NCBI GenBank assembly: GCA_002269645.1
Contig: NIVC01001948.1
Location: 222,856-286,855, forward strand
Direction of reading: 5' to 3'
Source: Macrostomum lignano
Lineage: Eukaryota
Length of the DNA: 64,000 nucleotides
The translations under genes were made by a program, and so were the position numbers. Shown in pieces: positions 30,327 to 61,700 of the stretch (within the stretch, counting starts at the first letter, position 1; each line of letters begins with the position of its first letter). Under the pieces are notes generated by a model. The model was not told the DNA's origin, ran no database searches, and worked only from the letters and a program-made list of their open reading frames with translations.

Positions 30327-30837
30327 TCAATTGAGCACTCCAGCAGGGTCTGCGATCGCCTTCGAATTGCCTTCGGTAGCAGCCGCGGCGGCCAAGCCGG
30401 CCCTGCGACTCATCTCCTCAATCGAGTAGGTGCTCGTCAGCTCGTTGTAGAGCTCATCCAGCCCAACTTCCTGGTCAGTGGCTTCGCCTTGGCTTTCGCT
30501 GGAGTCACCTCTGCCCAATGAGTTTGCTTTCGATTTCGCTGCCGCCTTGGCTACCGCAACTGCGGTGGTGGCGACGGCTGCACCGGCGGACGTCTTGCCG
30601 GCTTTCAGTGCGGTTCGACCCGGTGCAGCTGCGGCAGACGTTGTCGAGTTCGCAGCCATTGCCAGCGGAGTTAAGGAGCGCCGCCTGGGTGGCTCCGGCT
30701 GTTGCTGCTGCTTGGGCGTCAGTCTGCCGGCTGGAGTCTGCCGACTAGCTGTCGGATTCGGCGTCCGGGCCTGTCGGTTTGGCGACGTCCGGCTGCTGCT
30801 GCCGCGGGCGTCGGTCTTGGACAGAGGCTTCAGTCGG

Positions 30838-30891
<54 letters not shown>

Positions 30892-33800
30892 CAACTGCTG
30901 GACCGGCGTCGTTTCACCAGCTTCTCGGCTGCCGGACTGAACAGAGCAACCTCGGGCGTTGTGCAGCCCTGCGCTCTGGCCCACTGCTCCGCCGTTCGAC
31001 CGGTCCGTTCGTCAGTTTTAGACACAGATGCGTGGCCCTCGATGGCCAGTAGCGAAGCGCTTTCGGTGAAGCCGTTCTTAGCGGCAATCAGCATGGCTGT
31101 GAAGCCTTCCTTGTTCACGCGGTCAATGTCGAGACCAAGGCGTCGGAAACATTTGATTAGTATGCCGATGCCAGTGTCGTTGCCAACTCTGGCGCAGTGC
31201 ATCAGGGGCGTGTTACCTGCGAATTAATGCATAGGAGAGGGATTGTTTTCATGTGGGAGCTGTGGTAAACCATCCAGGTGATTCAAGTGTGAGCTGTGGT
31301 AAACCATCCAGGTAATTCAAGTGTGAGCTCTGGTAGAGCATCCAGGTGATTCAAGTGTGAGCTGTGGTAAACCATCCAGGTGATTCAAGTGTGAGCTGTG
31401 GTAGAGCATCCAGGTGATTTAAGTGTGAGCTGTGGTAAACCATCCAGGTGATTTAGGTGTGAGCTGTGGTAAACCATCCAGGTGATTCAAGTGTGAGCTG
31501 TGGTAGAGCATCCAGGTGATTTAAGTGTGAGCTGTGGTAAACCATCCAGGTGATTTAAGTGTGAGCTGTGGTAAACCATCCAGGTGATTTAGGTGTGAGC
31601 TGTGGTAAACCATCCAGGTGATTCAAATGTGAGCTGTGGTAAACCATCCAGGTGATTCAAGTGTGAGCTGTGGTAAACCATCCAGGTGATTCAAGTGTGA
31701 GCTCTGGTAGAGCATCCAGTGATTCAAGTGTGAGCTGTGGTAAACCATCAAGGGGATTTAAGTGTGAGCTGTGGTAGACCATCCAGGTGATTCAAGTGTG
31801 AGCTGTGGAAAACCATCCAGGTAATTCAAGTGTGAGCTCTGGTAGAGCATCCAGTGATTCAAGTGTGAACTGGTGATTCAAGTGTGGGCTGTGGTAAACC
31901 ATCCAGGTGATTTAAGTGTGAGCTGGTGATTCAAGTGTGAGCTGTGGTAAACCATCCAGGTGATTCAAGTGTGAGCTGTGGTAGAGCATCCAGGTGATTC
32001 AAGTGTGAGCTGTGGTAAACCATCCAGGTGATTCAAGTGTGAGCTGTGGTAGAGCATCCAGGTGATTCAAGTGTGAGCTGTGGTAAACCATTCAGGTGAT
32101 TTAAGTGTGAGCTGGTGATTCAAGTGTGAGCTGTGGTAAACCATCCAGGTGATTCAAGTGTGAGCTGTGGAAAACCATTCAGGTGATTCAAGTGTGAGCT
32201 GTGGTAAACCATCCAGGTGATTCAAGTGTGAGCTGTGGTAAACCATCCAGGTGATTCAAGTGTGAGCTGTGGTAAACCATCCAGGTGATTTAAGTGTGAG
32301 CTGTGGTAAACCATCCAGGTGATTTAAGTGTGAGCTGTGGTAGAGCAACTAACTCAAATCACTTGGAATTTCTAGACCCTAATTAGAAGTTGAATACCCT
32401 CTAGTCCAATGGAAACTTCTCCAAATGACAACAAAATTCTAGCTAAGGTGTCTTTAAAAGCACCCTATAAAAAAGCAATTCCATCGCAGTTAATGACTCT
32501 GCTAATTCCTAAGCTGGAGATGTGACATGACATTGCGTGCCAGGTGAATTCAATTTTTTAAGAGGAGCGCACCCGATTGCCTATAGTTATTTGGGACAGG
32601 ATCACGCATTTACTGACAAATCTCGTTGTAGAATACAGTCCGGCACTTTTTCAAATCAGCCGGATCCGTAGCCTCTCCAATCAGTTGGATCGGTAGCCTC
32701 TCCAATCAGCTAGATCCGTAGCCTCTCCAACCAGCTGGATCGGTAGCCTCTCCAACCAGCTGGATCGGTAGCCTCTCCAATCAGCTGGATCGGTAACCTC
32801 TCCAATCAGCTGGATCGGTAGCCTCTCCAATCAGTTGGATCGGTAGCCTCTCCAATCAGCTGGATCGGTAGCCTCTCTAATCAGCTGGATCGGTAGCCAC
32901 TCCAATCAGCTGGATCGGTAGCCTCTCCAACCAGCTGGATCGGTAGCCTCTCCAATCAGCTGGATCGGTAGCCTCTCTAATCAGCTGGATCAGTAGCCTC
33001 TCCAATCAGCTGGATCGGTAGCCTCTCTAATCAGTTGGATCGGTAGCCTCTCTAATCAGCTGGATCGGTAGCCTCTCCAATCAGCTGGATCGGTAGCCTC
33101 TCCAATCAGCTGGATCGGTAGCCTCTCCAATCAGTTGGATCGGTAGCCTCTCCAATCAGCTGGATCGGTAGCCTCTCTAATCAGCTGGATCGGTAGCCAC
33201 TCCAATCAGCTGGATCGGTAGCCTCTCCAACCAGCTGGATCGGTAGCCTCTCCAATCAGCTGGATCGGTAGCCTCTCCAACCAGCTGGATCGGTAGCCTC
33301 TCCTATCAGCTGGATCGGTAGCCTCTCCAACCAGCTGGATCGGTAGCCTCTCCAACCAGCTGGATCGGTAGCCTCTCCAATCAGCTGGATCGGTAGCCTC
33401 TCCAATCAGCTGGATCGGTAGCCTCTCCAATCAGCTGGATCGGTAGCCTCTCCAATCAGTTGGATCGGTAGCCTCTCCAATCAGCTGGATCGGTAGCCTC
33501 TCCAATCAGCTGGATCGGTAGCCTCTCCAATCAGTTGGATCGGTAGCCTCTCCAATCAGCTGGATCGGTAGCCTCTCCAACCAGCTGGATCGGTAGCCTC
33601 TCCAACCAGCTGGATCGGTAGCCTCTCCAACCAGCTGGATCGGTAGCCTCTCTAATCAGCTGGATCGGTAGCCTCTCCAACCAGCTGGATCGGTAGCCTC
33701 TCCAACCAGCTGGATCGGTAGCCTCTCCAACCAGCTGGATCGGTAGCCTCTCCAACCAGCTGGATCGGTAGACTCTCCAATCAGCTGGATCGGTAGCCTC

Positions 33801-36800
33801 TCCAATCAGCTGGATCGGTAGCCTCTCCAATCAGCTGGATCGGTAGCCTCTCCAACCAGCTGGATCGGTAGCCTCTCCAATCAGCTAGATCGGTAGCCTC
33901 TCTAATCAGCTGGATCGGTAGCCTCTCCAATCAGCTGGATCGGTAGCCTCTCCAACCAGCTGGATCGGTAGCCTCTCCAATCAGCTAGATCGGTAGCCTC
34001 TCCAATCAGCTGGATCGGTAGCCTCTCCAATCAGCTGGATCGGTAGCCTCTCCAATCAGCTGGATCGGTAGCCTCTCCAACCAGCTGGATCGGTAGCCTC
34101 TCCAATCAGCTGGATCGGTAGCCTCTCCAATCAGCTGGATCGGTAGCCTCTCCAATCAGCTGGATCGGTAGCCTCTCCAATCAGCTGGATCGGTAGCCTC
34201 TCCAATCAGCTGGATTGGTAGCCTCTCCAATCAGCTGGATCGGTAGCCTCTCCAACCAGCTGGATCGGTAGCCAAATAACCAGACCAATAGCACCTCACC
34301 GTCCTTATCCGGCAGCTCCGGGTCCACATTGTGACGCACCAGTAGTCGCACAACATCATTATGCCGCATCTCGCAGGCGTAGCTCAGTGCCGTCCTCCCG
34401 GAGTCGTCCTGGTAGTTTGGCTGAGCGCCGTACGCCAGCAGCATCTGCATAATTCTCTGGCGACACTTTTCCTCCTGTAGAAGTTTTTTTGAAGTTTCAG
34501 ATGTTTAAGTGGCATTCAAGTGCTTCATTCCTTTTTAATTGTTTTATCAAATCCAGTTTGTACGGAAAATCCAGTTTACATGTACACAAAATATAGGGGC
34601 GCCAGCACCAGGGGCGCCAGCACCAGGGGGTGCGCCAAATCTACTGCAAGGAGGCGCCAAAGCCACTGCAAGGAGGCGCCAAATCTACTGCAAGGAGGCG
34701 CCAAAGCCACTGCAAGGAGGCGCCAAATCTACTGCAAGGAGGCGCCAAAGCCACTGCAAGGAGCGCCAAAGCCACTGCAAGGGGCGCCAAAGCCACTGCA
34801 AGGGGCGCCAAAGCCACTGCAAGGGGCACCAAGGCCACTGCAAAGGGCGCACTAAAGCTAGTCAGCGCCAGGTGAAGGGAACAGTGAGTTTTTCAAATAA
34901 AATTTTTGTAATAGTTCAAGTTTCCTTGAAAAGTCAACCAGTAAGAAATTGACACCTTTGAGCAGTATACTCAAGCCGGGTGAAAATTCAAAGTTTAACT
35001 TTGACTTGCCTACATCACAATAGCAATTGAAATTGTCAATGTCGAGATTTACATGTAGAAATCGTTGATAAAATCAATTAAGACAGAGGCGAAACTGCAG
35101 GTAGATGCTGACTGACACATTCATCAACCCTTTCTGCACTACGAGAGCGTATTAGGAGTTCACAGAGAGCTTCTTAGCTGATCACCTGTGACAGGTGTGG
35201 TGAGGGAGAGGAACTAAAGTACACGTTGACAGGAGATTTCTACAAAAAATGGAGAAAAAATCTGAGATGAAGGAACCGCGTCAGCTGAGCAGGATGACAC
35301 GGGGCTCACGGATGCTACAGGCTTAATGAGCGACAGGCAGGTGAACTCCTGGTCAGCTTACAGTTGCACTCTTGCATGCAAGCAACAGTATAGGCTGATC
35401 CGTTCGACTCAAATTGCTTGTTTTTCATGGCCTATCATTTTTCTGCTGGCAATTTTTTGATCAATTTTTTGGAGCAAATGAGGAAACATGTGAAAGGATG
35501 GGGAGAGGAGGGGGGAAGGCAGAAGAGGGGGAGAAGGGAGAGAAGAAGAGGAGGGGAGAGAAGGGGGAGAAGGGAGAGGAGGGGGAGAAGGGAGAGAAGG
35601 GGAGGAGGGGGAGAAGGGAGAGGAGGGGGAGAAGGGAGAGGAGGGGGAAAAGGGAGAGGAGGGGGAGAAGGGAGAGGAGGGGAGAGAAGGTAGAGGAGGG
35701 GGAGAAGGGAGAGAAGGGGGAGGATAGGGAGAAGGGAGAAAAGGGGGAGAAGGGAGAGGAGGGGGAGAAGGGAGAGGAGGAGGAGAAGGGAGAGGAGGGG
35801 GAGAAGGGAGAGAAGGGGGAGAAGGGAGAAAAGGGGTAGAAGGGAGAGGAGGGGGAGAAGGGAGAGAAGGGGAGAAGGGGGAGGAGGGGGAGAAGGGAGA
35901 GGAGGGGAGAGGAGGGGGAGAAGGGAGAGAAGGGGGAGGGGGAAGGGAGAGGAGGGGGAGGAGGGGAGAAGGGAGAGGAGGGGAGAGGAGGGGGAGAAGG
36001 GGGAGAAGGGAGAGGAGGGGGAGAAGGGAGAGGAGAGGGAGAAGGGAGAGAAGGGGGAGAATTGGGAGAGGAGGGGGAGAAGGGAGAGGAGGGGGAGGAG
36101 GGGAGAAGGGAGAGGAGGGGGAGGAGGGGGAGAAGGGAGAGAAGGGGAGGAGGGGGAGAAGGGAGAGGAGGGGGAGGAGGGGGAGAAGGGAGAGGAGGGG
36201 AGAGGAGGGGGAGAAGGGAGAGAAGGGGGGAGGGGGAGAAGGGAGAGGAGGGGGAGAAGGGAGAGAAGGGAGAGAAGGGGAAGGAGGGGGAGAAGGGAGA
36301 GGAGAGGGAGAAGGGAGAGAAGAGGGAGAAGGGAGAGGAGAGGTCAGATGGGAAAGGGAGAGGAGAAGAGGATCGGAGAAGTGAGGAAAAGAGGAACTGG
36401 GAGAAATTTCAGGTACATGTAAGTCAATAGAGATGGGCAAACTACAAGCGTGGGATGAAGCAAGCATCAGACTGTGCATGGATTATGTACACAAAGCATC
36501 TCCAGCAGGCTGCATAGTCTGAGTAAACGCTACGCATTCCGGATAGAGAAATGCAAATAAAAAGAGCTGTGTGATGAGACAGGGTCAGAAACTGCGGCAA
36601 GGGCCTGGCGGGTTAGTGGGAGAAACCAGCTGAGAACATCGGGACATGCAAGACGAGGCTAAACGCAATCAGAGAACATGGAAGCTACTTGTAGCGCATT
36701 GCAATCAGATATGCTTGTGGCTATAGATGCAGGACAGCCTGCAACAGTGCAGTGTACTCGTATAATCCACTTGTTTATTGTGAGCATTTGGCCACACGTA

Positions 36801-37931
36801 GATGAATTCAGTTTATAGTTAAACAAACTTTGAATAGAATTGTAATATTGCTTGTGTAAGAAGCCCGTAAATCCTTGTTCCTTTATTTGGCACCAAGGGG
36901 CGCCAGTACCAAGTGGCGCCAGCACCAAGGGGCGCCAGCACCAAGGGGCGCCAGCACCAAGTGGCGCCAGCACTAAGTGGCGCCAGCACCAAGTGGCGCC
37001 ATCACCAAGGGGCGCCAGCACCAAGGGGCGCCAGCACCAAGGGGCGCCAGCACCAAGGGGCGCCAGCACCAAGGGGCGCCAGCACCAAGGGGCGCCAGCA
37101 CCAAGGGGCGCCAGCACCAAGGGGCGCCAGCACCAAGGGGCGCCAGCACCAAGGGGCGCCAGCACCAAGGGGCGCCAGCACCAGGGGCGCCATCACAAGG
37201 GGCGCCAGCACCAAGGGGCGCCAGCACCAAGGGGCGCCAGCACCAAGGGGCGCCAGCACCAAGGGGCGCCAGCACCAAGGGGCGCCAGCACCAAGGGGCG
37301 CCAGCACCAAGGGGCGCCAGCACCAAGGGGCGCCAGCACCAAGGGGCGCCAGCACCAAGGGGCGCCAGCACCAAGGGGCGCCAGCACCAAGGGGCGCCAG
37401 CACCAAGGGGCGCCAGCACCAAGGGGCGCCAGCACCAAGGGGCGCCAGCACCAAGGGGCGCCAGCACCAAGGGGCGCCAGCACCAAGGGGCGCCAGCACC
37501 AAGGGGCGCCAGCACCAAGGGGCGCCAGCACCAAGGAGCGCCAGCACCAGGGGCGCCAGCACCAAGGGATGCTAGCATAATCCCAAAGGGAACGCTGACA
37601 ACCCTTAATTGTAGCATAGGTATGCAGCCACCACCATCCGGAATGCAATGCTTGCGCTCACCGTAATATACACAGATCTAATTAGCGGCGTTTTGCCTTT
37701 GAAATCGCGAAAATTTGTCGCCAACCCGACGTCGCCTTCGCAAGCTTCCAATATAAATTTGGCCAGGTGGCTCTTGCCGCGATTAACCGCGTCAAGGAGC
37801 GCATTGGCCGCGGTCTCCATGCCGGGCTGATCGCGGGCGGTCTTTGCAGCCGAGCTCTGCAGCTGCTGCTGAGGCAGAGCTGAAACTTTTCCTGCAGCCT
37901 TCATCTGGCTCTGAGGATAGGAGCGGTTCAT
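30327..37931 (-). CDS. Ankyrin-repeat protein, ANKRD63-like, about 444 aa, 3 exons, poly-Gln in a low-complexity tail
   Basis: Exons: 37931-37662, 34474-34300, 31216-30327 (phases 0, 1). GKSHLAKFILEA, GRTALSYACE, GNTPLMHCA and FRRLGL resemble ANKRD63 (GKVHLARFVLDA..RTALSLACE..FRRLGL). The start codon is uncertain. Confidence 0.85.
31250..32346 (+). repeat. 34-bp minisatellite (GTGTGAGCTGTGGTAAACCATCCAGGTGATTCAA) in ANKRD63-like intron 2
   Basis: About 32 units, some internally deleted. Confidence 0.94.
32660..34272 (+). repeat. 25-bp minisatellite (TCCAATCAGCTGGATCGGTAGCCTC) in ANKRD63-like intron 2
   Basis: About 64 units, ending about 27 nt from the donor. Confidence 0.96.
34596..34850 (+). 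repeat. GGCGCCA-core repeats (GGGGCGCCAGCACCA x2, then ~21-22-bp GGCGCCAAAGCCACTGCAAGGA) in ANKRD63-like intron 1
   Basis: Tandem units visible directly. Confidence 0.85.
35500..36400 (+). repeat. ~900-bp purine-rich tract (GGGGGAGAAGGGAGAGGA-type) in ANKRD63-like intron 1
   Basis: Nearly all G/A. Confidence 0.92.
36888..37566 (+). repeat. 16-bp minisatellite (GGGGCGCCAGCACCAA) in ANKRD63-like intron 1
   Basis: About 42 units. Confidence 0.96.
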
Positions 37932-38404: not shown

Positions 38405-38814
38405 TGTAAATCCATGGTCTGGCTTCGGGTCTCCTTGACTACATTTAGACTGACTGCATGCATGGCCCAACCCCGGAGAGAAAGATTTCCTTGATGTGTT
38501 CACTTCAGCCTGCTAATTGGCAATTAACTTACAGTCGAAAAATTGCGTGCGCGTTTCTAATCATCGAACTGGAGCAAAAGTACACTTACTAAAAAGTTAA
38601 TTCTGAATCTTAGGATTATTGTGCTGAACTTTCTAAATGCTACTACGAGAGGGAGCTTGTTTTCAATGGTTAAACATTTTTATATTACGTACATGTAACG
38701 GTGCATGCAAACGTAGTTTAGTGCATGCTAGACAGATAACACAGTAAAATAGACAAGCCCACTTGGTAGTACAAAAGAAACTCAGAGAGTAGCTTCTCAA
38801 GGGCGATGGTAGGT

Positions 38815-39390
38815 TCTCAGGGTGCCACGGTAGATTCTTAAGGAGCCACGGTAGATTCTTAAGGAGCCACTAGATTCTTAAGGAGCCACGGTAGATTCTT
38901 AAGGAGCCACGGTAGATTCTTAAGGAGCCACGGTAGATTCTTAAGGAGTCACGGTAGATTCTTAAGGAGCCACGGTAGATTCTTAAGGAGTCACGGTAGA
39001 TTCTTAAGGAGCCATGGACCCACGGTAGATTATTAAGGAGCCACAGTAGATTCTGTAAGGTGCCACGGTAGATTCTTAAGGAGCCACGGTAGATTCTTAA
39101 GGAGCCACAGTAGATTCTTAAGGAGCCACGGTAGATTCTTAAGGAGCCACAGTAGATTCTGTAAGGTGCCACGGTAGATTCTTAAGGAGCCACGGTAGAT
39201 TATTAAGGTGCCACAGTAGATTCTTAAGGAGCCACGGTAGATTCTTAAGGAGCCACGGTAGATTCTTAAGGAGCCACGGTAGATTCTTAAGGAGCCACCG
39301 TAGATTCTTTAAGGTTCCACGGTAGATTCTTAAGGAGCCACGGTAGATTCTTAAGGAGCCACGGTAGATTCTTAAGGAGCCACAGTATAG
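38815..39390 (+). repeat. 21-bp minisatellite (CCACGGTAGATTCTTAAGGAG) between the two SINEs
   Basis: About 27 units. Confidence 0.94.
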
Positions 39391-40962: not shown

Positions 40963-43361
40963 TCACCTGTCGGTTTTATCCGCCCCAGTAGCACCAGAAG
41001 AATCCGCCGACACAAGCGCCATAGCGGCAGTATAAACGCTAGTAAAAGAATAGCCTTCAGCTCCGAGCATGTGGCTATCGTCTAGAAAGTACTCAATGTA
41101 CTTTAAATGGCAGAGCAGAGCCGGCTGGCCGGAGGTGGCCACAACGAATGCCAGCACGGGCACCAGATCGTCGGCGCCGATTTCGCCGGCCCCGGCGGCC
41201 GATCGCATCGCCGCTAAGGCGCTGTTCAGAGTGTCCTGCAACAGTTGGCACTTTGCCAAAGGCGTACCAGGCGAGGCGCACAGTCGGCGCAGTAGGTCGC
41301 GCGATTCCGACAACGGCGCTAAATCGGTTGTTAAACTGTCGAATCGTTGACCGACGCCGCACAGTTTAGCAACGGATTCTAACTGAGAGGTGACCTGACA
41401 GTCTGCCTGTTTGTCCCCTGCTACTTCGATCATGACAGCGGCCAGTCTGCTGAGATGAGGCCGCAGTACGATGGCCAGTCGGGCCAGGGCGCACGACTCC
41501 ACCCGGGGGGAGAGCAGGCGGCCAGACAGCAGCGCGGAGCATGCGGCCACCTCGTGACTGGCTAATCCGCCATCGCTGCCGCCGCCGCCGCAGAGAAGAC
41601 AGGCGGCCAGAGCCAGCCGACGCAACAGACGACAGGCGACGCGGCCGACTCTGGCTGAGGAATCGTCGCGATCGGCGTCAAGCAGCAGACTGTCCGTCAG
41701 GCTCAATAGTTCAACGTCGGGAGCCTCGACAGAGTCGGCAGGGGTTGGCGGCGCTACGGACAGCCGATTGGCCAGCCGGTCGGAGAATGCGGCAATAAAA
41801 GCAGCCAGTGGGTGGTCGGGAATGGACAGCACGTACTGCAGGCGGGCAGGCGGCTGGCCGGCGGATTTCTGGTACAGCTGATCCCGGTACAGCACCAGGT
41901 AGTCGAACTCGCTGCACCGGCAGTACAGGGTGCGCAGCTCGGCGGCATCGATGGCCTTTTCCTTGAAGGGGGTGGGGGCACCGAATCTTATCGCCTCTGA
42001 CACTGAATCGTATCGCCTCTGACACCGAATCTGATCGCCTCTGACACCGAATCTGATCGCCTCTGACACTGAATCTTATCGCCTCTGACACCGAATCTTA
42101 TCGCCTCTGACACTGAATCTTATCCCCTCTGACACTGAATCTTATCGCCTCTGACACCGAATCTTATCGCCTCTGACACCGAATCTTATCGCCTCTGACA
42201 CTGAATCTTATCGCCTCTGACACCGAATCTTATCGCCTCTGACAACGAATCTTATCGCCTCTGACACCGAATCTCAGCACACTTGACACCGAATCTTATC
42301 GTCTCTGACACCGAATCTCAGCACACCTGACACCAAATCTTATGACACCTGACACCGAATCTCAGCACACCTGACACCGAATCTGATCACACCTGACACC
42401 GAAGCTCATCACACCTGACACCGAATCTGATCACACCTGGCACCGAATCTCATCACACCTGACACCGAATCTCATCACACCTGACACCGAAGCTCATCAC
42501 ACCTGACACCGAATCTGATCACACCTGACACCGAATCTGATCACACCTGACACCGAATCTCATCACACCTGACACCGAATCTGATCACACCTGACACCGA
42601 ATCTCATCACACCTGACACCGAATCTTATCCTAGCAATAATTATCAAACACTGACTGACACAAAGGAAAATATCACAGAATCCTTAAAGCCAAACCTCAT
42701 CAGACTCCACAGGTCCGTCATTATATTCGAATACCTCCGTATGCAGCTGAAACAGGCGGCTACAGTCGGTCCGTTTAGCCAGCAGATCATCCTGCAGAGC
42801 CTGTTCAAAAGCCGCCTGTTTCGGCTTAGCCAACTGCAAATTCTCTTCTATTCGGCGTTGCAAAGCCAGGTGTAAATTAACCCGGCGTGGGTCACCTTTG
42901 GGCAGGGCGCTGGTCCTAGCCAGATGGGCGCTGTAGAGCCGCCTGTTCAGCTCCATCGCTTCTTGCATGGGGGATTTACGCGGACCAAGATAGGCTGGAG
43001 CTGGAGGAAGTGGAGAAGAGGCAGTACCCGCAAGCTGCGCCGGAGTCTGGGCCGCTGCTTGATGAGGCGGCGGCTTACCCGGTTGCTGGGGTGTCCGATT
43101 ACCAGGAGGGGCGGCATTTAATAACGCGTCGCTTCGTTCTAAACACAATTTCATCAATCGCATCAACTTCCGCTGCTCATCCAACTGTTGAGCTGATAAT
43201 TGAGCAACTGGGACAGCCTGAGAGGCGGCAGCAGCAGCTGAAGCAACAGCCGCAGCCAGGACCTGCTGCATGCAGGCTAAATAAGGGAAATAGCATCGTT
43301 CGCTTTGGCCTTGTTCGTCCTGACGGAGAACGTCTAGGACTGCCGTCACGGCCGTCTGTGA
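40963..43361 (-). CDS. VPS9D1: VPS9 domain-containing protein 1-like (Rab GEF); no ATG at the 5' end of the conserved frame
   Basis: Exons: about 43361-42696 and 41961-40963 (phase 0). N-terminal LMKLCLER and LQRRIEENLQLAK resemble VPS9D1 LKLAQQCLER and LQRQMMENLVIAK; VPS9 core IGADDLVPVLAFVV..GAEGYSFTS. The ORF-track M at 43349 is GTG; there is an in-frame TAA just upstream of the CTGCAG acceptor. Confidence 0.85.
41980..42630 (+). repeat. 22-bp minisatellite (CTCTGACACCGAATCTTATCGC grading into CACACCTGACACCGAATCTCAT) filling the VPS9D1 intron
   Basis: About 30 units with a polar variant gradient. Confidence 0.94.
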
Positions 43362-43477
43362 CTGCAGCGGAATTTTTTAATCAAATCAAAATTTGCGGTA
43401 TAATAAGTTATTCTTTTACGCCAATAATAGTTCCAATCCAAAGAGCACTGCATCTTGAGAACCTTTCCGGGAGTCAA

Positions 43478-44430
43478 TCATCTAGATAAACTTTCCTAGA
43501 AACCGTTATGTAGATAAACTTTCCTAGAATCTGTCATCTGGAGAACTTTTCCTAGAATCAGTCATCTAGAGACCTTTTCCTAGAATCAGTCATCTGGAGA
43601 ACTTTTCCTAGAATCAGTCATCTGGAGAACTTTTCCTAGAATCAGTCATCTAGAGACCTTTTCCTAGAATCTGTCATCTAGAGACCTTTTCCTAGAATCT
43701 GTCATCTAGAGAATCTTTCCTAGAATCAGTCATCTAGAGAACTTTTCCTAGAATCTGTCATCTAGAGAACTTTTCCTAGAATCTGTCATCTGGAGAACTT
43801 TTCCTAGAATCAGTCATCTAGAGACCTTTTCCTAGAATCTGTCATCTAGAGACCTTTTCCTAGAATCTGTCATCTAGAGAACTTTTCCTAGAATCTGTCA
43901 TCTGGAGAACTTTTCCTAGAATCAGTCATCTAGAGACCTTTTCCTAGAATCTGTCATCTAGAGACCTTTTCCTAGAATCTGTCATCTAGAGACCTTTTCC
44001 TAGAATCTGTCATCTAGAGACCTTTTCCTAGAATCTGTCATCTAGAGAATCTTTCCTAGAATCAGTCATCTAGAGAACTTTTCCTAGAATCTGTCATCTA
44101 GAGAATCTTTCCTAGAATCAGTCATCTAGAGACCTTTTCCTAGAATCAATTATCTAGAGAATTCTTTCTTAGAATCAATCATCTAGAGAATTCTTTCCTA
44201 GAATCCATCATCTAGAACTTTTCCTAGAATCCATCATCTAGAGAATTCTTTCCTAGAATCAATAATCTAGAGAACCTTTCCTAGAATCCATCATCTAGAA
44301 CTTTTCCTAGAATCCACCATCTAGAGAATTCTTTCCTAGAATCAGTAATCTAAAGAACTTTTCCTAGAATCAATCATCTAGAAAATCATTCCAAGAATCT
44401 GTCATCTATACAACCATTCCTAGAATCAAT
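43478..44430 (+). repeat. 28-bp minisatellite (TTTTCCTAGAATCAGTCATCTAGAGAAC) between RPL13 and VPS9D1
   Basis: About 33 units. Confidence 0.93.
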
Positions 44431-44662
44431 AAAGAACATTTCTCAGAATTCCTAGAAAAAACATTTTAGAAACTTTCGTATTTCCGCATAACAGAAAAAA
44501 AAACAAGAAAGACTTGAAATTTTTAATCCATCAATCAAATTGGGCACGCGCAAGTGTATTTAACGGTGTCAATTTTATTCAAGTTGTTAGTTAAGCTTTT
44601 AACGCACAAAGTGAGAAACAGCCACCATTAGATCAGCTATATAGCTCAGCTCAGTTAACTCA

Positions 44663-45286
44663 TCACTTCTTCTCCTTCTCAGCCTGCTCGGCTTTCTTCT
44701 TGCGCAGTCCGTCGAGCCGCTTGTTCGCCCGAGCCTGTCGGATAGCGTGGAAGGCGTGGAACTTCTTGTCGTCCTCCGATTGGACGCGAGCCTTCACGCG
44801 GCGCAGTCGGCGGCCCGGAGCCACCACAGGCGGCAGCGGACGCTGTACAACAGAACGGAGCTCCTCCTCCGAAGCTTCGCCAGCCTTCGGCGCCTTGGGA
44901 TTCTTCGGGAATAGGATCAGCTTGCCGCGGTAGGCCTTCAATCGCTGGGCATTGCGCTGCAGACTCTCGGCTGAGCGATTCTTGCGCCGATGATCAACGG
45001 CGATGCCGATGGTTTGGGCGAGTCGGCGATTGATGCCGGCGGCCTTGAGCTCGTCCAGGCTGAAGCCGCGGCCGGGGCGGACACGCATGTTGTACCTGAT
45101 GGTCTGGCAGCGGACCACCGGGCGAAGAGGCCCGTTCACTGGCCGGGGCGCTATAAGGCGCGCCTTCTCGACGCGAGCTTTACGACGGCGCTCCTTGCGA
45201 GCGGGCTGGTTGAACCAGGTGCGAACAAAGCGCTGCCAGTCCTTGTGGAAGTGGGCATTCGGTATGATGTTCTTGCGCTTCACCAT
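44663..45286 (-). CDS. RPL13: 60S ribosomal protein L13 (eL13), 207 aa, intronless CDS
   Basis: [62 protein letters not shown] acceptor 11 nt before the ATG; AATAAA on the minus strand at about 44573-44578. Confidence 0.97.
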
Positions 45287-45968
45287 GGCGACCGGAACTG
45301 CATGCAAATCTGCAATTGCAAAAGTCAAACTTTGTTATTACTATGAGTAGGTTGACTGGATTATTTGTTTTTTTATTGAAGAAGTTAGATCTAAACTATT
45401 AGTTAGAGGACTCAAATGGGGACCTTTGACCAACATTTCTGAGCTAAAGGATATTGATGCTATTCAAACAAATTTCTACAAATACCTTTTCAACCTACCG
45501 AAGCATCTTTTTAGCAATAGTATTATTTAAGCTGAACTCAGCATCTTGCCAATTTCCTACACCAGATCCATAAAGCCTTTTAAATTTATTTAGTTAAAAC
45601 TAAGACACAAAAACACTATCAACACCCCCATTGAACTCTGAAGCAAACACAAGCTCACAAAATCTATGGAAAACTAATAATGTAACTAAAATACTACATG
45701 GCATCAATTTGGAATGCATGACCACAATGAACCCAGACAAAAAATCTCTGTTTTACATTACCTTCCCACTCCCAAATCTTATATACATGCCAGAAAATTC
45801 CAACATATAACAGATAAATTTTACTATATGAATGATATATAGCTGATACAACTGCATAATCTTGTAGTTGACAATAATAATTGTGAGTGGCTGTGGCACT
45901 AAAATGAGTGCCTGCGGCACTAAAATGGGACCTGCAATGCCAATCTATGACATTGTTTTATTAATTAC

Positions 45969-46170
45969 CTTATTTTATATAAAAAATGATCAAATTTTGC
46001 AATTGATTTGTTTGAGGCGGAAGGCCTTTTAGTTCGATAGATGGTATGGCAGCGAAGAGTTTGTGCTGCTTTGCGCGTGTATTTATATATTTACAAACAA
46101 CGCCAGATTGAGGGGCCAAGCCAAGGGAGGTGCGAAACAGGTGGCGTGGCGTGATTGGCTATGCCAACCC
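45969..46170 (-). promoter_or_regulatory. Possible RPL13 promoter / non-coding first exon
   Basis: Pyrimidine-rich CTCTTCGC start near 46060, CCAAT-box-like ATTGG near 46156, AG|GTAATT donor at 45968. Tentative. Confidence 0.3.
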
Positions 46171-46846
46171 CCCCGGCTTAGCGAGCCGGCTAGCTTGGCG
46201 CGTACCCACCCCACCTCAGCTATAGACATAGGCGGGGGGGGGGGTTTCCAGTGCGGCTGCACTGGTGCTGCCGGTCGCGTAGTCTGGCCGCCACATGTTA
46301 CTAATATTACTGCATGCCATAGGTTAAATGTTCTAATGCAAATATTCCATGCAAATGCGTCATCCATATGCATACTTAACTCTAATTCTAACCCATAGAC
46401 ATCTGTGTGTTGATGAATCTTGAGTATTTGTGTTATGCAACCATATATGCATCTACATAGGTTATTCATCCTAGCAAAATGCATCAGGAACAAGAACTAC
46501 TATAGTCCTTATGGAGTCATGAAAATTAGTGAACTGTGTCCACAAGTTCCCACTCCTCTACCCTGCTATGTGTAGTCAACCAAAGCTAATCCCCTATAAC
46601 AAGTCTTGATATCTAATAATGCTCTTGGAGAATATCATGCACAATTCACATGCATCATACCATATTGTATAATGAATTTCACTCTGTCATGCTTAATACT
46701 AGGCTTCTGTAAGCTGGTCTAAAAGGAAGCAATACCTATCAAAGAAATGGCAAAATGATATATGTTCTATTTCTATGACATATATTATTCTATAATTCAA
46801 ATCCAAAAAGAAATATTGTGTATATCTATCATACTTATCAGTCATT

Positions 46847-47725
46847 AGTATAGCATTTTGCAGTCAAGCCTGAACCGCGGGCATTCAAATTAGACGCTTG
46901 ACCAGATCTCACTGCTGGCACAAATGCTATCTATGGCCTAGACAAAATCACACTGGTGGGCACTCAATTTAGACAAGGGGCATTCAAATTAGACAAGTTC
47001 TCAGGCGCATTGGCTGGGCAATTCAAGATCGTGTTGCATCTGTTGTCAGACAACCATTCTGTGAACCCTGAACTATGAAGATAAGAACAAGTTATAACAA
47101 AGTAAGCATGTGTGAACAAACAAAACAGGGTGCTCAGCACATCAATGAACAAGAGTCTCACAAGAGTCTCATCTGATAGAGAATTCAAACGATGTCTTCA
47201 TTTGCCAGACAGCGTGGGATGAAGCGGAGCGTGTGCTGATACCAGTGAACGCACTTCAGTGTAGTCACGTCATCCATCGCGATTTCCCCGCACCTCTGCA
47301 GCACCATCAGTCTCCATTGAATGGCAGTCATGTCAGGAGGCGGAACAGCCAATTCTCTCTGAACTTCAGGATTGGACAGCTGCCTCTTGACTGCTGATTT
47401 AAAGGCACTGTGAGCCAGTTCAACTGGGTTCAGGAAAGGAGAGTAAGGTGGTAAGATCTTCAGTTCAATTCGACCAACCCACTCCTCCGGGATTTGCAAT
47501 CCGTCGTGGATTGTCCATGGTCTTTCTCTCTGGCACACATAGACTTTCCGCTGCTTGTCTAATTTGAATGCCCATTGTCTAAATTGAGTGCCCGTCAGTG
47601 TGTTTCAGTTTGTGCCACAGACATAAAGTTCTGCTTGACTTGGGGATGGATTCTGAAATTTGGCTCTTCCCTTCTTGTCTAATTTGAATGCCCGCAGTTC
47701 AAACTTGACTACAAAATGCTATACT
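46847..47725 (-). mobile_element. Internally deleted Tc1/IS630-mariner element with IR-DR ends and a C-terminal transposase fragment
   Basis: ~49-bp TIRs (AGTATAGCATTTTG(C/T)AGTCAAG..GGGCATTCAAATTAGAC) with three symmetric GGGCA(T/C)TCAA(A/T)TTAGAC repeats per end. ORF 47185-47538 has LPPYSPFLNPVE (third catalytic residue region). TA TSD not cleanly resolved. Confidence 0.88.
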
Positions 47726-53883: not shown

Positions 53884-54201
53884 ATGGCCCCAGCCTATGA
53901 GATCTGTGTCGGCCTGAAAAAGGGCCACCGCATCACGGCCAACACGCCTCGCCCCAAGCCAGCCAATCGTCGGGGCAAAAGTACTAAAAATAGCAAATTT
54001 GTCCGTTCCGTTATTCGCGAAATTGTCGGCTACGCGCCGTACGAGAGGCGAATTGTTGAACTGTTGAAAATCTCCAAGGACAAGCGGGCGCTGAAGTTTG
54101 CTAAGCGTCGGCTTGGATCGCATCTGCGCGCCAAACGCAAGCGCGAAGAGATGGTGCGAGTTGTGCAGGCGCAGCATCGCAAGAAGGAACAGAAGGAGTA
54201 A
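53884..54201 (+). CDS. RPL36: 60S ribosomal protein L36 (eL36), 105 aa, intronless CDS
   Basis: [65 protein letters not shown] acceptor 2 nt before the ATG. Confidence 0.97.
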
Positions 54202-54370
54202 CTTGACCCGATGACCCTTGCCATCTGTGGCTCTTTAATGTCGAGTTATGTTGTGTCCTAATTCAATTATACAGAACACTCGACAAATGCTTGGATTGAA
54301 AAAAAAACCTTTTTGTGTTAACAATTAAGCGACTGTCTTTTGTTGTTCATATTGCCTTTGTTATTTATAA

Positions 54371-55587
54371 TCTAGAACACCAGTGTTTGTACAGGTGCCA
54401 GAATCTAGAACATCAGTGTTTGTACAGGTGCCAGAATCTAGAACACCAGTGTTTGTACAGGTGCCAGAATTTAGAACACCAGTGCTTGTACAGGTGCCAG
54501 AATCTAGAACACCAGTGTTTGTACAGGTGCCAGAATCTAGAACATCAGTGTTTGTACAGGTGCCAGAATCTAGAACACCAGTGTTTGTACAGGTGCCAGA
54601 ATCTAGAACACCAGTGTTTGAACAGGTGCCAGAATCTAGAACACCAGTGTTTGTACAGGTGCCAGAATCTAGAACACCAGTGTGAGTACAGGTGCCAGAA
54701 TCTAGAACATCAGTGTACAGGTGCCAGAATCTAGAACATCAGTGTTTGAACAGGTGCCAGAATTTATCTAGAACATCAGTGTACAGGTGCCAGAATTTAT
54801 CTAGAACATCAGTGTACAGGTGCCAGAATCTAGAACACCAGTGTGAGTACAGGTGCCATAATCTAGAACACCAGTGTTTGAACAGGTGCCAGAATCTAGA
54901 ACACCAGTGTTTGTACAGGTGCCAGAATCTAGAACACCAGTGTGAGTACAGGTGCCAGAATCTAGAACATCAGTGTTTGAACAGGTGCCAGAATTTATCT
55001 AGAACATCAGTGTACAGGTGCCAGAATCTAGAACACCAGTGTGAGTACAGGTGCCAGAATCTAGAACTTCAGTGTACAGGTGCCAGAATCTAGAACACCA
55101 GTGTTTGTACAGGTGCCAGAATCTAGAACACCAGTGTGAGTACAGGTGCCAGAATCTAGAACTTCAGTGTACAGGTGCCAGAATCTAGAACACCAGTGTG
55201 AGTACAGGTGCCAGAATTTATCTAGAACATCAGTGTACAGGTGCCAGAATCTAGAACACCAGTGTGAGTACAGGTGCCAGAATCTAGAACACCAGTGTAA
55301 GTACAGGTGCCAGAATCTAGAACTTCAGTGTACAGGTGCCAGAATCTAGAACACCAGTGTGAGTACAGGTGCCAGAATCTAGAACACCAGTGTTTGTACA
55401 GGTGCCAGAATCTAGAACACCAGTGTGAGTACAGGTGCCAGAATCTACAACACCAGTGTGAGTACAGGTGCCAGAATCTAGAACTTCAGTGTACAGGTGC
55501 CAGAATCTAGAACATCAGTGTACAGGTGCCAGAATCTAGAACACCAGTGTTTATACAGGTGCCAGAATTTATCTAGAACATCAGTGT
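54371..55587 (+). repeat. 33-bp minisatellite (TCTAGAACACCAGTGTTTGTACAGGTGCCAGAA) between RPL36 and NPL
   Basis: About 38 units, with 29-bp and 37-bp indel variants. Confidence 0.95.
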
Positions 55588-56028: not shown

Positions 56029-57403
56029 ATGCAGCAATTCCGTTTACCGAGACTGACCGTCCCAACGTTCACCCCTATGACGCCAGACGGGGAGTTGGAC
56101 CTGGACAAGATCCCAGCCTACGCACGCCTGCTCAGCCAGTCCGGGGTACGGAGCGTCTTCGTCTGCGGCAGCACCGGCGAGTTCCCCAGTCTCAGTCTGG
56201 ACGAGCGCAGGCGTGTTCTCGAAGCCTGGTGTCAGGCCCGCGCTGACGGCCTAATCGACACGGTGACCGCTCACGTGGGCACCTGCTGTCTCAAGGACAC
56301 CATCCTACTGGCCAGACACGCCGTGCAAAAGTGCAACGCGGACGCTGTAGCATCCGTGGCTCCCTGGTACTTCCCTATTGACCAGATCGACGCTACAGTG
56401 GAACTGCTGGCCAAGGTGGCTGCTGAGTGCGACGGCAAGCCCTTCTATTATTACCACATCCCGATGTTCACCAACAGCAAGCTAGACGTGGCCCAGCTGA
56501 TGCGCCGGGCCGCTGCACTTGTGCCGAACCTGGTCGGGCTGAAGTTCACGGACTCTTCGCTTAGTCAACTGGCCGCCTGCTCGGAGGTTGTTGCACCCGA
56601 CGGGCGACAGATGCAGGTGCAGGCGCGAGTTAAAGTTGCCTTTATGGTGGATTTATTATGCTCTACTCAGACCTTCCCACACTACCCAACCTACTCAATC
56701 CCTACCCAAACTACTCAACCCCTACCCAACCTACTCAACCTATCAATCCATCCAATCAACTTGACCTACTCAACCTACCAATATATCCAATCTACTTAAC
56801 CTACCTAACCTACCAATCCACTTAACCTACTAAACCTACTAATCCATCCAGTCTACTTAACCTACCAATCCATCCAATCTACTCAACCTACCAATCCATC
56901 CAATCTATTCAACCTACCAATCCATCTAATCTACTCAACCTACCAATCCATCCAATCTACTCAACCTACCAATCCATCCAATCTACTCAACCTACCAATC
57001 CATCCAATTTACTTAATCCACACCACAACAGGCCATAATCGGTCTGGACGACCTGACTTTGCCAGCCAGATCGGTGGGTGTCCTGGACGGCATCGGCGCC
57101 AGCTACAATCTGATTCCGGACGTTGTCAATTCTCTAGCCGACAGCTTTGACTCGGGCAATCTGAGCACAGCTCGCAGCGAGTCCAGCCGCATCCGGTCCC
57201 TATTCGAGGCGATCTCATCGGCAGTGGAAGGCTACGGTATGGTGTCGCTGTTAAAAATCACCATGTCCTTGATGCGAATGGACCTAGGACCGCCGCGTCT
57301 GCCGTTGAAGCCGCTGAATTCGCCTGCTAGAATCATTCTAGAACAGCGGCTAAAGTTCGACGGATTCTTAGCCAGGGATGAAGCGCAAGAGAAGCTGGCT
57401 TGA
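56029..57403 (+). CDS. NPL: N-acetylneuraminate lyase-like (DapA/NanA family), 319 aa, 2 exons
   Basis: Exons: 56029-56616 and 57032-57403 (phase 0). GSTGEF, YYYHIP, Schiff-base LVGLKFTD, C-terminal LGPPRLPL. The donor GTGCAG is weak (in-frame alternative at 56629). Confidence 0.85.
56665..57020 (+). repeat. ~26-bp C/A-rich repeat (CTACTCAACCTACCAATCCATCCAAT) in the NPL intron
   Basis: Degenerate on the left, regular on the right. Confidence 0.85.
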
Positions 57404-58734: not shown

Positions 58735-61700
58735 TCAGTCGCCCATTACCAGTTTGCGTACAGTCTTAGCGCTGCTGCTGCTGCTGCTGCCGCTGCCACC
58801 GCCTGCGGGTCGGCGAGGTCCCGGCCTGCCCGGGTTCATCTCGATGCTATAGACCAGGGTTTTCTTAGCTGGCACAACCGGTTCAGCCGAGCTAGACGAA
58901 GCTGATAGAGAGCTGTTATTGTGCTGCTGCTGCCCAATGGCATGGCTGGAGCGATTCTCGCGTTCTGAGCCGCCGCTAGGCCAGCGCTGATGCTGCTGCG
59001 GCTGCTGTTGCTGCAACGTCGACATGGAAGCCGACGTATTTTTCGGCCTAGTAGAAGCGGCGGCCGATGTCGTCAACGCCAGTCTTGGCGCGGCAGATTT
59101 CGGCGATTTGAACAGGCGCTGACGCTGAGGTGGCGGCGGCGGCTGCTGCTGCTGCTGCTGTTGCTGTTGAATTCCGCCAGCAGACAGGCGGTTACGATCG
59201 CTCAGCACAGCGGCGGATGTCGACGACCATGTCGACGCTAATGTCGATGTCAGGGCTGACGTGGCGATGGTTGAAGTGGACCGACTTGCCACGGCGGACG
59301 AAGCTGGGATTCAGTTTGAGGGGCAGCAAAATCAGTCTGCGAACATTGCACTGACACAAATTAACTGTCGAACGTACCTAAAGCTAAAATACCACTTATG
59401 CCGCCGTTTTCTGATACGACTTTTCACCGCGTTGCTTCCCTGCTCTCTCTTCTCTCTCTCCCCTCTATCTTCTTCCCTTCCCCTCTCCCCTTCTCCCCCT
59501 TCCACCCCCCTCTCTTCCCTCCCCTCCCTTTCCTCTCCCCTCTCTTCCACCCAGGTATCACTTTTTTATCACTGAGGCTACAATGCCACTCACCAGTGGA
59601 CTCAACAATAGACCTGGGCGTAACAATAGAACAATAGAATGAACCAACACAGGTCAAATATTAACAGGAGGGTCGTGACTTCGGGGTCAGAGCACTTTCT
59701 CACCCCCAATCACTCGATTGCAAACTTTGTCTCCATTGCTATCGAACAAGTTCTTAATAACAACAAAATCGAACTTAGGGAAGAGATCTGGAATAAAAAA
59801 CTGGGGACTGACAAACCGCCGGGTACGAACATCAGGGTCGACAATCATCTCCGACCCATCCCATTGGTCCTTCCTTTTCACCCATCTACGGTCTGGCTCG
59901 CCAACGAGATAGCTAAAAACTTTGATAAGCTACAAAATAAACCAGGCTCCCGCATACTGCCCGCTTTTACACGGCAACGTAACTTACAGAGCCTCCTGGC
60001 TCCCAATAAGTCAAGTCTCAGCCAGGAAACCAGTAACTTACAGAGCCTCCTGGCTCCCAATAAGTCAAGTCTCAGCCAGGAAACCAGTAACTTACAGAGC
60101 CTCCTGGCTCCCAATAAGTCAAGTCTCAGCCAGGAAACCAGTAACTTACAGAGCCTCCTGGCTCCCAATAAGTCAAGTCTCAGCCAGGAAACCATTGAAT
60201 CATTTTAACCAATGCGCTCATTTTACCCTATTGAAGTACAATATTTATTCACGTTTATTTCTTTCAATGATTGTACTCACAAATATCGATTTTTATGCTC
60301 CTACCCTACCCCCAATACCGAAATTTCATCTAATCGTATAATATCGTATATCGTACGAGTATAGTACTTCGAAATAACAAATTTTATATAATAAATATAC
60401 TGTGTCGATTAAAATTAATGGTGGAAAGCCACTGGGACAAGTTAAAGCTAGGCAAAACAGGGTTTTAAATGTACATCCCTCACATGTACAACTACTCATC
60501 AATTTTATCAGACTAAGAAAAATAATACTTAAAAGACCAACTTGAATTGCATGACACACAGATTTTTTTGGCCTGACGAAGAGCCCAGAGGCTCGAAACC
60601 GGTAGCCAATATTAAATTAATTATTTTTTTAAACACGCCGTGACCTCTCTTCTCTCTCTCTCTCTACCTCTCTCTCTCCCCTCCATCTTCTTTCCTTCCC
60701 CCCCTCTCTTTCCCCTCTATCTTCTTTCCTCCCCCCCTTTCTCTCCCCTCTATCTTCTTTCCCTCTATCTTCTTTCCTCCCCCCTCTCTCTCCCCTCTAT
60801 CTTCTTCCCTTCCCCTCTCCCCTTCTCCCCTTCCACCCCCTCTCTTCCTTTCCCCTTCTCTTCCCCCCTCTTTTTACTTCTCCTCTCTTCGCTTCTTCCA
60901 TCCCCCTCTCTTCCCCCCTCCCTTTCCTCTCCCATCTCATCCCCCTCCCTTTCCTCTCCCATCTCATCCCCCTCCCTTTCCTCTCCCATCTCATCCCCCC
61001 TCCCTTTCCTCTCCCATCTCATCCCCCTCCCTTTCCTCTCCCATCTCATCCCCCTCCCTTTCCTCTCCCATCTCATCCCCCCTCCCTTTCCTCTCCCATC
61101 TCATCCCCCTCCCTTTCCTCTCCCATCTCATCCCCCTCCCTTTCCTCTCCCATCTCATCCCCCCTCCCTTTCCTCTCCCATCTCATCCCCCCTCCCTTTC
61201 CTCTCCCCTCTCTTCCACCCAGGGATCACTTTTTTATCACTGAGGCTACAATACCACTCACCAGTGGTCTCAACAATAGACCTGGGCGTAACGCTAGCAG
61301 TCTGAGTCTCAACCGGATACGAGCTGCGCAGCTGAGCCGGCTGCCGCTGATTCCTCTGCTGCAGTTCCGCGATACGCTTCCACTCAAGCAGGTGCGCGTC
61401 CTCGTCTTCGCAGGACAGCTGGCCGCCTTTACCGCCGCCGCCGCCACCGCCTGCGCCACCAGCAGCGGCTGAGCAGCCGTTATTACTAGCGTTATTACTA
61501 GTGCTCAGAGCGAACGGTCTGCGATCAAACACTGGTGAAGCGGCCATGTTCACGTCGGAGTTGGCCCGCACCAGCTGGTGCACCCGGTTCGACTGCAGCG
61601 GCGGCGTTGTCGGCAACTGGCGCTGCTCGTCGGCAGGCTCCGGCGATTCAACAACTCCACCGTTGCGACGCTGCTGTGCCGAGCGGATGTTGGCGGCCTC

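Follow-up and report, generated by a model that had tools for sequence, protein, structure and literature searches.

Probable spliced-leader donation of the start codon to a VPS9D1-like gene downstream of RPL13 in Macrostomum lignano

Described systems and the locus

In the flatworm Schistosoma mansoni, the AUG that ends the spliced leader (SL) is a proven initiator codon (Cheng et al. 2006, J Biol Chem 281:733, as relayed by PMC9851317 and PMC12582326). We analyzed a VPS9D1-like gene of Macrostomum lignano that may depend on the same device and that follows the ribosomal protein gene RPL13 in a 64,000-nt stretch of DNA, referred to here as the window. An earlier note on this DNA had proposed that the SL donates the start codon of the VPS9D1-like gene, provided that the organism was a flatworm; the window proved to be 100% identical to contig NIVC01001948.1 of the M. 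lignano assembly Mlig_3_7 (GCA_002269645.1). The note had not mentioned the strand; it is the minus strand for both genes. The S. mansoni case resembles this locus in that the SL ends in AUG, in frame and with no earlier genomic AUG, and in that conserved protein sequence is found upstream of the first genomic AUG. The locus differs in that M. lignano is a free-living macrostomid with its own 35-nt SL, and the use of the SL AUG is here a prediction from sequence.

The M. lignano SL, CGGTCTCTTACTGCGAAGACTCAATTTATTGCATG, is 35 nt long and ends in ATG (PMC8629364), and the ATG of the Macrostomum SL has been called a translation start codon (PMC10468722). Its 3' end reads TTGCATG, within CAATTTATTGCATG and TTATTGCATG. 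Between 30 and 39% of M. lignano genes are trans-spliced (PMC8629364, PMC5730564), and the premise that a flatworm SL ends in AUG thus holds in a species with widespread trans-splicing. The motif [T/C]TNCAG is enriched at trans-splice acceptors, and cis-splice donors follow the consensus GT[G/A]AG (PMC8629364). The studies of SLs and operons in this species (Wudarski et al. 2017, PMC5730564; Ustyantsev and Berezikov 2021, PMC8629364) concern the same organism and assembly and the same acceptor motif. The operon work describes repeat-inflated spacers that shrink to a few hundred nucleotides when the repeats are subtracted, as does the spacer between RPL13 and the VPS9D1-like gene. These studies give genome-wide statistics and do not discuss open reading frames (ORFs) that depend on the SL AUG, whereas membership at this locus was assigned by sequence criteria and the GenBank model.

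Three further systems are close to parts of the locus. In SL-dependent ORFs (slORFs), identified with slORFfinder (PMC9851317), the SL also supplies the start codon; however, the VPS9D1-like slORF predicted here from sequence is a conserved main ORF rather than an alternative or overlapping frame. In SL2-type operons of Caenorhabditis elegans, as at this locus, a poly(A) signal is followed by a U-rich element and then by the acceptor of the downstream gene, and most M. lignano operons contain two genes, as in C. elegans. In contrast, M. lignano has a single SL without a specialized SL2, the spacer described here measures 0.9 to 1.75 kb rather than about 100 nt, and the nematode SL does not end in AUG. 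Finally, the M. lignano protein shares with vertebrate and invertebrate VPS9D1 an N-terminal three-helix domain with an EAYxxYL motif and a C-terminal VPS9 domain, yet it is shorter (555 versus about 630 to 890 aa), is about 20 to 30% identical, and has a start codon that is not encoded by the gene.

The VPS9D1-like gene and its 5' end

Both exons of the VPS9D1-like gene were 100% identical to PAA62346.1 (BOX15_Mlig015965g2, Mlig015965.g2, labeled "partial," 555 aa), the protein (P0004) of which equals our two-exon model plus one extra N-terminal residue, a Q from CAG. A search with the spliced protein yielded M. lignano proteins exclusively, and L002, the genomic locus of PAA62346.1, is contained in full and without differences in the window. 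The GenBank gene model drew on RNA sequencing (RNA-seq) and SL-read evidence. In two paralogous copies, its coding sequence (CDS) is 5' partial, begins at position 43364 at the acceptor, and is preceded by no other exon. The 5' end of the annotated mRNA therefore lies between the in-frame TAA and the acceptor, a zone in which a trans-spliced mRNA is expected to start and in which a promoter-driven start is unlikely. Three paralogous contigs, assembled separately, were identical from the final 120 nt of the putative outron through the acceptor to exon nucleotide 140, with one difference farther upstream. It is thus unlikely that the missing start codon is an assembly error.

Translation of positions 43400 to 42690 of the minus strand read F, stop, F, D, stop, K, I, P, L, Q up to the acceptor and SQTAVTAVLDVLRQDEQGQSERCYFPYLACMQQ beyond it; the exon itself begins with TCACAGACGGCCGTG. 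As the earlier note had stated, the frame is closed by a TAA (43379-43377) just 5' of CTGCAG/TCA at 43362, and the first in-frame genomic ATG, which had been placed at about codon 31, is indeed exon codon 31 (43271-43269), or Met32 when the SL AUG is counted. Precisely at the acceptor, the GC content steps up from 33% to 54%. By chance alone, some 35 open codons ahead of an ATG would be unremarkable; the homology, this step in GC content, and the annotated 5' end are what set the frame apart from a chance event. The VPS9D1-like gene contains no usable genomic start codon.

The similarity to VPS9D1 that the earlier note had seen upstream of the first ATG proved real. An exhaustive phmmer search of 1.84 billion representative proteins returned VPS9-domain proteins of 660 to 890 aa with alignments that begin at query residue 7 to 9, matched to residue 10 to 13 of the hit, and the alignments covered query residues 7 to 290 in P0015, P0016, and P0031. 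Orthologues of VPS9D1 align from M. lignano residues 3 to 9 onward and begin just 4 to 13 residues before Q3/T4; P0070 is probably vertebrate VPS9D1, judging by the human N terminus. The invariant columns of the N-terminal alignment (A1) are Y25 and Y28 of the EAYxxYL motif, both of which precede Met32, and Met32 itself aligns with an internal hydrophobic position of the orthologues. An AlphaFold2 model of residues 1 to 94, with the SL-derived Met as residue 1, had a mean confidence score (pLDDT) of 89 and contained helices at residues 3 to 17, 25 to 47, and 58 to 84. The best PDB matches in Foldseek were MIT domains (VPS4B, spartin, calpain-7, and MITD1), with a probability of about 0.9 and nonsignificant E values of 0.65 to 2, so that "MIT-like" denotes a resemblance only. 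At the C terminus, the VPS9 domain (Pfam PF02204, E = 1.1e-14) occupies protein residues 455 to 539 (about 41268 to 41014). In the model, a conserved three-helix domain has its first helix and part of its second encoded by the 30 codons ahead of the genomic ATG, and a start at Met32 would delete helix 1, a third of helix 2, and the EAYxxYL motif. A ribosome that skipped the SL AUG would meet the out-of-frame AUG at 43296-43294 before it reached Met32.

Joining the SL ATG to the exon at 43362/43361 produced an in-frame M-S-Q-T-A-V..., as had been predicted, with the N terminus (M)SQTAVTAVLDVLR. Read through the unspliced genomic sequence, the frame that begins with ATG and TCACAG runs for 226 codons before a stop; splicing gives a product of 555 aa. 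Twelve AG sites lie in the interval from 160 nt before to 40 nt after the exon start. Two of them (43362/43361 and 43356/43355) gave a long ORF from the SL AUG; at the other 10, that ORF stops after 2 to 39 codons. The CTGCAG at 43367-43362 fits [T/C]TNCAG and is the sole match in the unique segment adjoining the exon. This motif occurs 1.7 times per kb on the minus strand, so a match alone is weak evidence; at the CTGCAG acceptor, homology and the higher GC content also begin, and the annotated 5' end falls there as well. The second of the two AG sites lies in frame 6 nt downstream (tcacag/ACG); an exon starting there reads ACGGCCGTG and would yield M-TAVTAV... instead of M-SQTAVTAV....

We propose that the VPS9D1-like pre-mRNA is trans-spliced to the 35-nt SL at CTGCAG/TCA (43362/43361). 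This would remove the AT-rich, minisatellite-filled upstream RNA, including the in-frame UAA, and would set the SL AUG in frame. Translation would then start at M-S-Q-T-A-V-T-A-V-L... and give a 555-aa protein with the three-helix (MIT-like) domain intact at the N terminus and, at the C terminus, a VPS9 domain, which is a Rab guanine nucleotide exchange factor domain. We infer both the joining of the SL at the 43362 acceptor and the use of its AUG as the initiator, and we consider it quite likely that the SL supplies the initiator AUG of this gene. An SL-donated AUG combined with a probable RPL13-led operon is, as an overall explanation, likely.

Some observations weigh against SL donation. 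In GenBank, the first base of the VPS9D1-like CDS is placed 3 nt ahead of the AG boundary; the RPL13 CDSs, in contrast, all follow directly on CAG, and the annotated 5' end of the VPS9D1-like gene may for that reason not reflect a peak of SL reads. The offset may possibly have arisen because a single gap suffices to align the SL end TTGCATG with genomic CTGCA-G, so that SL reads would be drawn to T43366. We considered that GenBank models might generally carry a 3-nt extension standing for the SL ATG and rejected this, as five of five RPL13 models start at the first full codon after CAG. The polypyrimidine tract ahead of the 43362 acceptor is short. Text searches of the supplements of PMC5816591, PMC5730564, and PMC5173321 contained neither Mlig015965 nor VPS9D1. 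A protein search with the SL-encoded peptide fused N terminally returned no candidate; it also missed the known P0001 and was hence uninformative.

The spacer, the operon, and other explanations

The earlier note had described the spacer between RPL13 and the VPS9D1-like gene as a 28-bp minisatellite, a U-rich tract, and the RPL13 AATAAA on the same strand. All three were located, by Tandem Repeats Finder (TRF) or by reading the sequence, together with a unique AT-rich segment next to the acceptor. The distance from the RPL13 stop codon to the acceptor was 1,301 nt in the window and 881 and 1,750 nt in the other two paralogous loci, which differ only in minisatellite copy number: spacers of 881, 1,301, and 1,750 nt contained 17, 32, and 45 matches to the 28-bp core motif. 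The unique flanks (about 293 nt on the RPL13 side and about 140 nt on the acceptor side) are nearly identical among the three copies. A comparison of the loci for selective constraint was uninformative, because they are nearly identical outside the minisatellite.

When the 978-nt TRF array is subtracted from the 1,301-nt spacer of the window, 323 nt remain if the count starts at the stop codon and about 210 nt if it starts at the expected poly(A) site. This range of about 210 to 320 nt lies in the short mode that PMC8629364 treats as operonic; the criterion used there is a repeat-subtracted distance of <1 kb together with a trans-spliced downstream gene. RPL13 and the VPS9D1-like gene are on the same strand and fall within that distance, and the acceptor motif, the frame, and the annotated 5' end suggest that the downstream gene is trans-spliced. 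The two genes were adjacent and on the same strand in three of three contigs with this RPL13 paralogue (L005, L006, and L007), and nothing lay between them on the opposite strand in any of these copies. Upstream of RPL13 on the minus strand, we found only a DDE-transposase fragment and no annotated gene within 8 kb; RPL13 would thus be the first gene of the unit.

RPL13 is annotated in GenBank as a 5'-partial CDS of 210 aa (45295-44663), which matches P0010 exactly on three contigs, and the gene carries a precomputed Pfam Ribosomal_L13e domain. Annotated 5'-partial RPL13 CDSs begin at the first full codon after CAG in three sequence contexts, and the de novo transcriptome supplement of PMC5173321 gives an RPL13 transcript, RNA1509_261, the flag TRANSSPLICED. 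These data point to trans-splicing of RPL13 itself, and we infer that this takes place at 45298/45297 in the window. If the pair is an operon, the promoter would therefore lie upstream of an RPL13 outron. The RNA upstream of the VPS9D1-like exon would probably be RPL13 transcript that continues past its poly(A) signal, and the pair would make up a two-gene, SL-resolved operon with an intercistronic region inflated by a variable minisatellite. On balance, we lean slightly toward the conclusion that RPL13 and the VPS9D1-like gene form an operon, a judgment close to even.

Other points count against the operon. The raw spacer is 0.9 to 1.75 kb long, RPL13 has a canonical AATAAA, and the transcriptional-unit names differ (Mlig018539 family versus Mlig015965). 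A promoter within the spacer is possible. In a second group of RPL13 paralogues, a convergent methyltransferase gene lies downstream instead of the VPS9D1-like gene, which shows that the linkage is not required for RPL13. If these points prevail, the VPS9D1-like gene would still be trans-spliced and still receive the SL AUG, but its own promoter in the 1.3-kb spacer, in the flanks or the minisatellite, would drive a monocistronic pre-mRNA of which the SL replaces the outron. About 60% of trans-spliced M. lignano genes lie outside assigned operons (PMC8629364), and, besides the raw spacer of 881 to 1,750 nt, the AATAAA 83 nt past the RPL13 stop, and the differing names, a large difference in expression level is expected between RPL13 and the VPS9D1-like gene. 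However, the repeat-adjusted spacer falls in the published operonic short mode, the adjacency was kept in three of three copies, and no recognizable core promoter was found when the spacer was looked over without a eukaryotic promoter tool. We regard a separate promoter as unlikely, though the strongest of the alternatives.

An account without trans-splicing is improbable. Transcription would start at about 43364 to 43366, perhaps by means of ttattata, and translation would start at Met32 or at a near-cognate codon (ACG at 43355-43353 or GUG at 43349-43347). In its favor, the annotated CDS begins 3 to 5 nt upstream of the AG, unlike that of RPL13; the TA-rich ttattata lies about 30 nt upstream; and near-cognate codons are present in frame, while an older gene model (P0006) starts at Met32. 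Against this, it would take a coincidence to put the transcription start site no more than 5 nt from a perfect [T/C]TNCAG acceptor, right where the homology and the higher GC content set in. A Met32 start would also lose the N-terminal helices and the invariant motif described above, and the out-of-frame AUG would come first.

The earlier note had counted two ATGs in the spacer and had found that neither opens a usable exon. The count was wrong, as the spacer, scanned over 1,299 nt, holds 41 ATGs, mostly within the minisatellite (longest ATG-initiated ORF, 30 codons); the absence of a usable exon held, since none of the nine phase-0 GT sites behind these ATGs matched the donor consensus GT[G/A]AG. 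The note had named a cis-spliced upstream exon with an ATG as a refutation; a check for one in the spacer and the annotation gave neither a consensus phase-0 donor behind an ATG nor an annotated upstream exon, coding or noncoding. That an unannotated exon, in the spacer or beyond RPL13, is cis-spliced to 43362 and supplies the ATG is very improbable: nine spacer ORFs do end in a phase-0 GT, three of them as a bare ATG/GT that would give the same M-SQTAV protein, and orthologues have 4 to 13 more N-terminal residues, but none of the donors fits the consensus, the RNA-seq-guided annotation lacks an upstream exon in two copies, and most candidates lie in the RPL13 3' untranslated region (UTR) or in the copy-number-variable minisatellite.

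With SL donation of the AUG as the preferred explanation, the VPS9D1-like gene is most likely an ordinary case of a described flatworm mechanism, already present in GenBank as a 5'-partial CDS. There is no new mechanism here, as SL-AUG initiation was already established for Schistosoma in 2006 and SL operons whose spacers are inflated by repeats have been published for M. lignano. What the locus offers is a conserved gene with a main ORF that would depend on an SL start codon, a clean case that is easy to test in a flatworm amenable to transgenesis. It is doubtful that the variable minisatellite is more than neutral filler and has a function in the unit, whether as a tunable spacer, as a promoter internal to the unit, or in transcript processing; if it has, it would set the share of abundant RPL13 transcription that reaches a gene untranslatable without trans-splicing.

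SL-AUG-dependent genes enter public databases as "5'-partial" or cut to an internal Met. For the VPS9D1-like protein, UniProt carries a version that starts at Met32, versions without Met, and a version fused to RPL13. Because the database versions are inconsistent, flatworm annotation pipelines should supply the SL AUG in ORF calling. The UniProt models from an older assembly, P0001, P0002, P0006, and P0007 (A0A1I8IGN2, A0A1I8JR37, A0A1I8HCE2, and A0A1I8H5R0), are mutually inconsistent. P0002 is an RPL13-VPS9D1 fusion with frame errors and is unreliable as evidence of a polycistronic precursor, P0006 begins at Met32, and two of the older models begin with QQSQTAV, where L-Q-S stands in every Mlig_3_7 copy. 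There is no support for the UniProt names "PCI domain-containing" and "DH domain-containing"; Pfam analysis of full-length P0004 gave only VPS9 above threshold.

Features of the gene pair and its surroundings

Table 1. Features of RPL13 and the VPS9D1-like gene, in window coordinates. A slash marks a splice boundary.
Feature	Position	Strand	Remarks
Two AATAAA	40554..40571	-	About 400 nt past the VPS9D1-like stop; likely mRNA 3' end, as read from sequence
Exon 2, VPS9D1-like	40963..41961	-	332 codons plus stop; carries the VPS9 domain
Intron 1	41962..42695	-	GT...AG, 734 nt; junction ...GPVESDE/EKAIDAAEL matches P0004
Exon 1, VPS9D1-like	42696..43361	-	222 codons, starts TCA CAG ACG GCC GTG; donor GAG/GTTTGG; translation equals P0004 minus its first residue
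First in-frame genomic ATG	43269..43271	-	Exon codon 31, residue 32 with the SL AUG; inside predicted helix 2
Out-of-frame ATG ahead of Met32	43296-43294	-	Frame 2
Acceptor ccgCTGCAG	43367-43362	-	AG 43363-43362; boundary 43362/43361; exon from T43361
In-frame stop TAA	43379-43377	-	Five codons upstream of the acceptor; frame closed there
Unique AT-rich segment	43362..43450	-	89 nt, 33% GC; 3' end of the putative outron/intercistronic region; holds the TAA and the acceptor
28-bp minisatellite	43451..44428	-	TRF, 34.9 copies; plus-strand consensus CATCTAGAGAACTTTTCCTAGAATCAGT; most of the spacer
U-rich tract tctttcttgtttttttttctgtt	44490..44512	-	Downstream of the RPL13 poly(A) signal; one substitution in paralogues; putative function
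RPL13 AATAAA	44574..44579	-	83 nt past the stop codon; identical in three paralogous loci
RPL13 (eL13) CDS, single exon	44663..45286	-	ATG 45286-45284; 207 aa; tandem stops TGA TGA
CAG acceptor before the RPL13 5' UTR, cag/TTCCGGTCGCCATG	45298..45300 (45298/45297)	-	Putative RPL13 trans-splice site

The coordinates of both genes are given in Table 1. An exact look-up of the 207-aa RPL13 had no match, because the public record is the 5'-partial 210-aa CDS. At the putative RPL13 acceptor, the SL AUG would be out of frame and would open a 6-codon upstream ORF (uORF), AUG UUC CGG UCG CCA UGG UGA, of which the final UGA overlaps the RPL13 AUG (AUGGUGA). In every RPL13 paralogue, the SL AUG would likewise be out of frame and open a 6-codon uORF ending in such a UGA (window 45280-45310 on the minus strand; around 5990 to 6015 in L003 and L004). 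The same SL AUG would thus be the start codon of the VPS9D1-like protein and the start of an overlapping uORF for RPL13.

Upstream of RPL13, a GC-rich segment of about 270 bp (about 46020 to 46290, minus strand) with CCAAT, TATA, and terminal oligopyrimidine (TOP)-like motifs was considered as an RPL13 or operon promoter with a cis-spliced 5' exon. We rejected this candidate, as the segment is an insertion that L006 and L007 lack and only the window copy has. It had no Rfam match and probably represents an inserted element or a fragment. The DDE_3 transposase fragment (47185-47538, minus strand; E = 1.8e-5, below the Pfam cutoff) is the sole coding-like minus-strand feature between RPL13 and RPL36. 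The latter is an intact single-exon gene for ribosomal protein L36e (53884-54201, plus strand; Pfam E = 2e-40), located 8.6 kb from RPL13. Also on the plus strand is a DHDPS-family gene (N-acetylneuraminate lyase-like) with two exons, 56029-56799 and 57059-57403. The window contained neither the SL sequence nor any Rfam family or tRNA.

On the other side of the gene pair, about 2.6 kb past the poly(A) signals of the VPS9D1-like gene, are minus-strand ORFs with ankyrin repeats (34181-34450 and 30327-31202) and a possible first exon at 37605-37931. Within this region (30327-37931), the part covered by L002, from window position 30963 upward, has no annotated gene. The window as a whole is very rich in tandem repeats. 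A 22-bp minisatellite of 29.6 copies (41979-42630, TRF) fills nearly all of intron 1 of the VPS9D1-like gene. Beyond the intron, minisatellites were located at 38789-39387, and the repetitive pattern of ORFs points to others at 33200-37600, 54300-55100, and 59900-62500.

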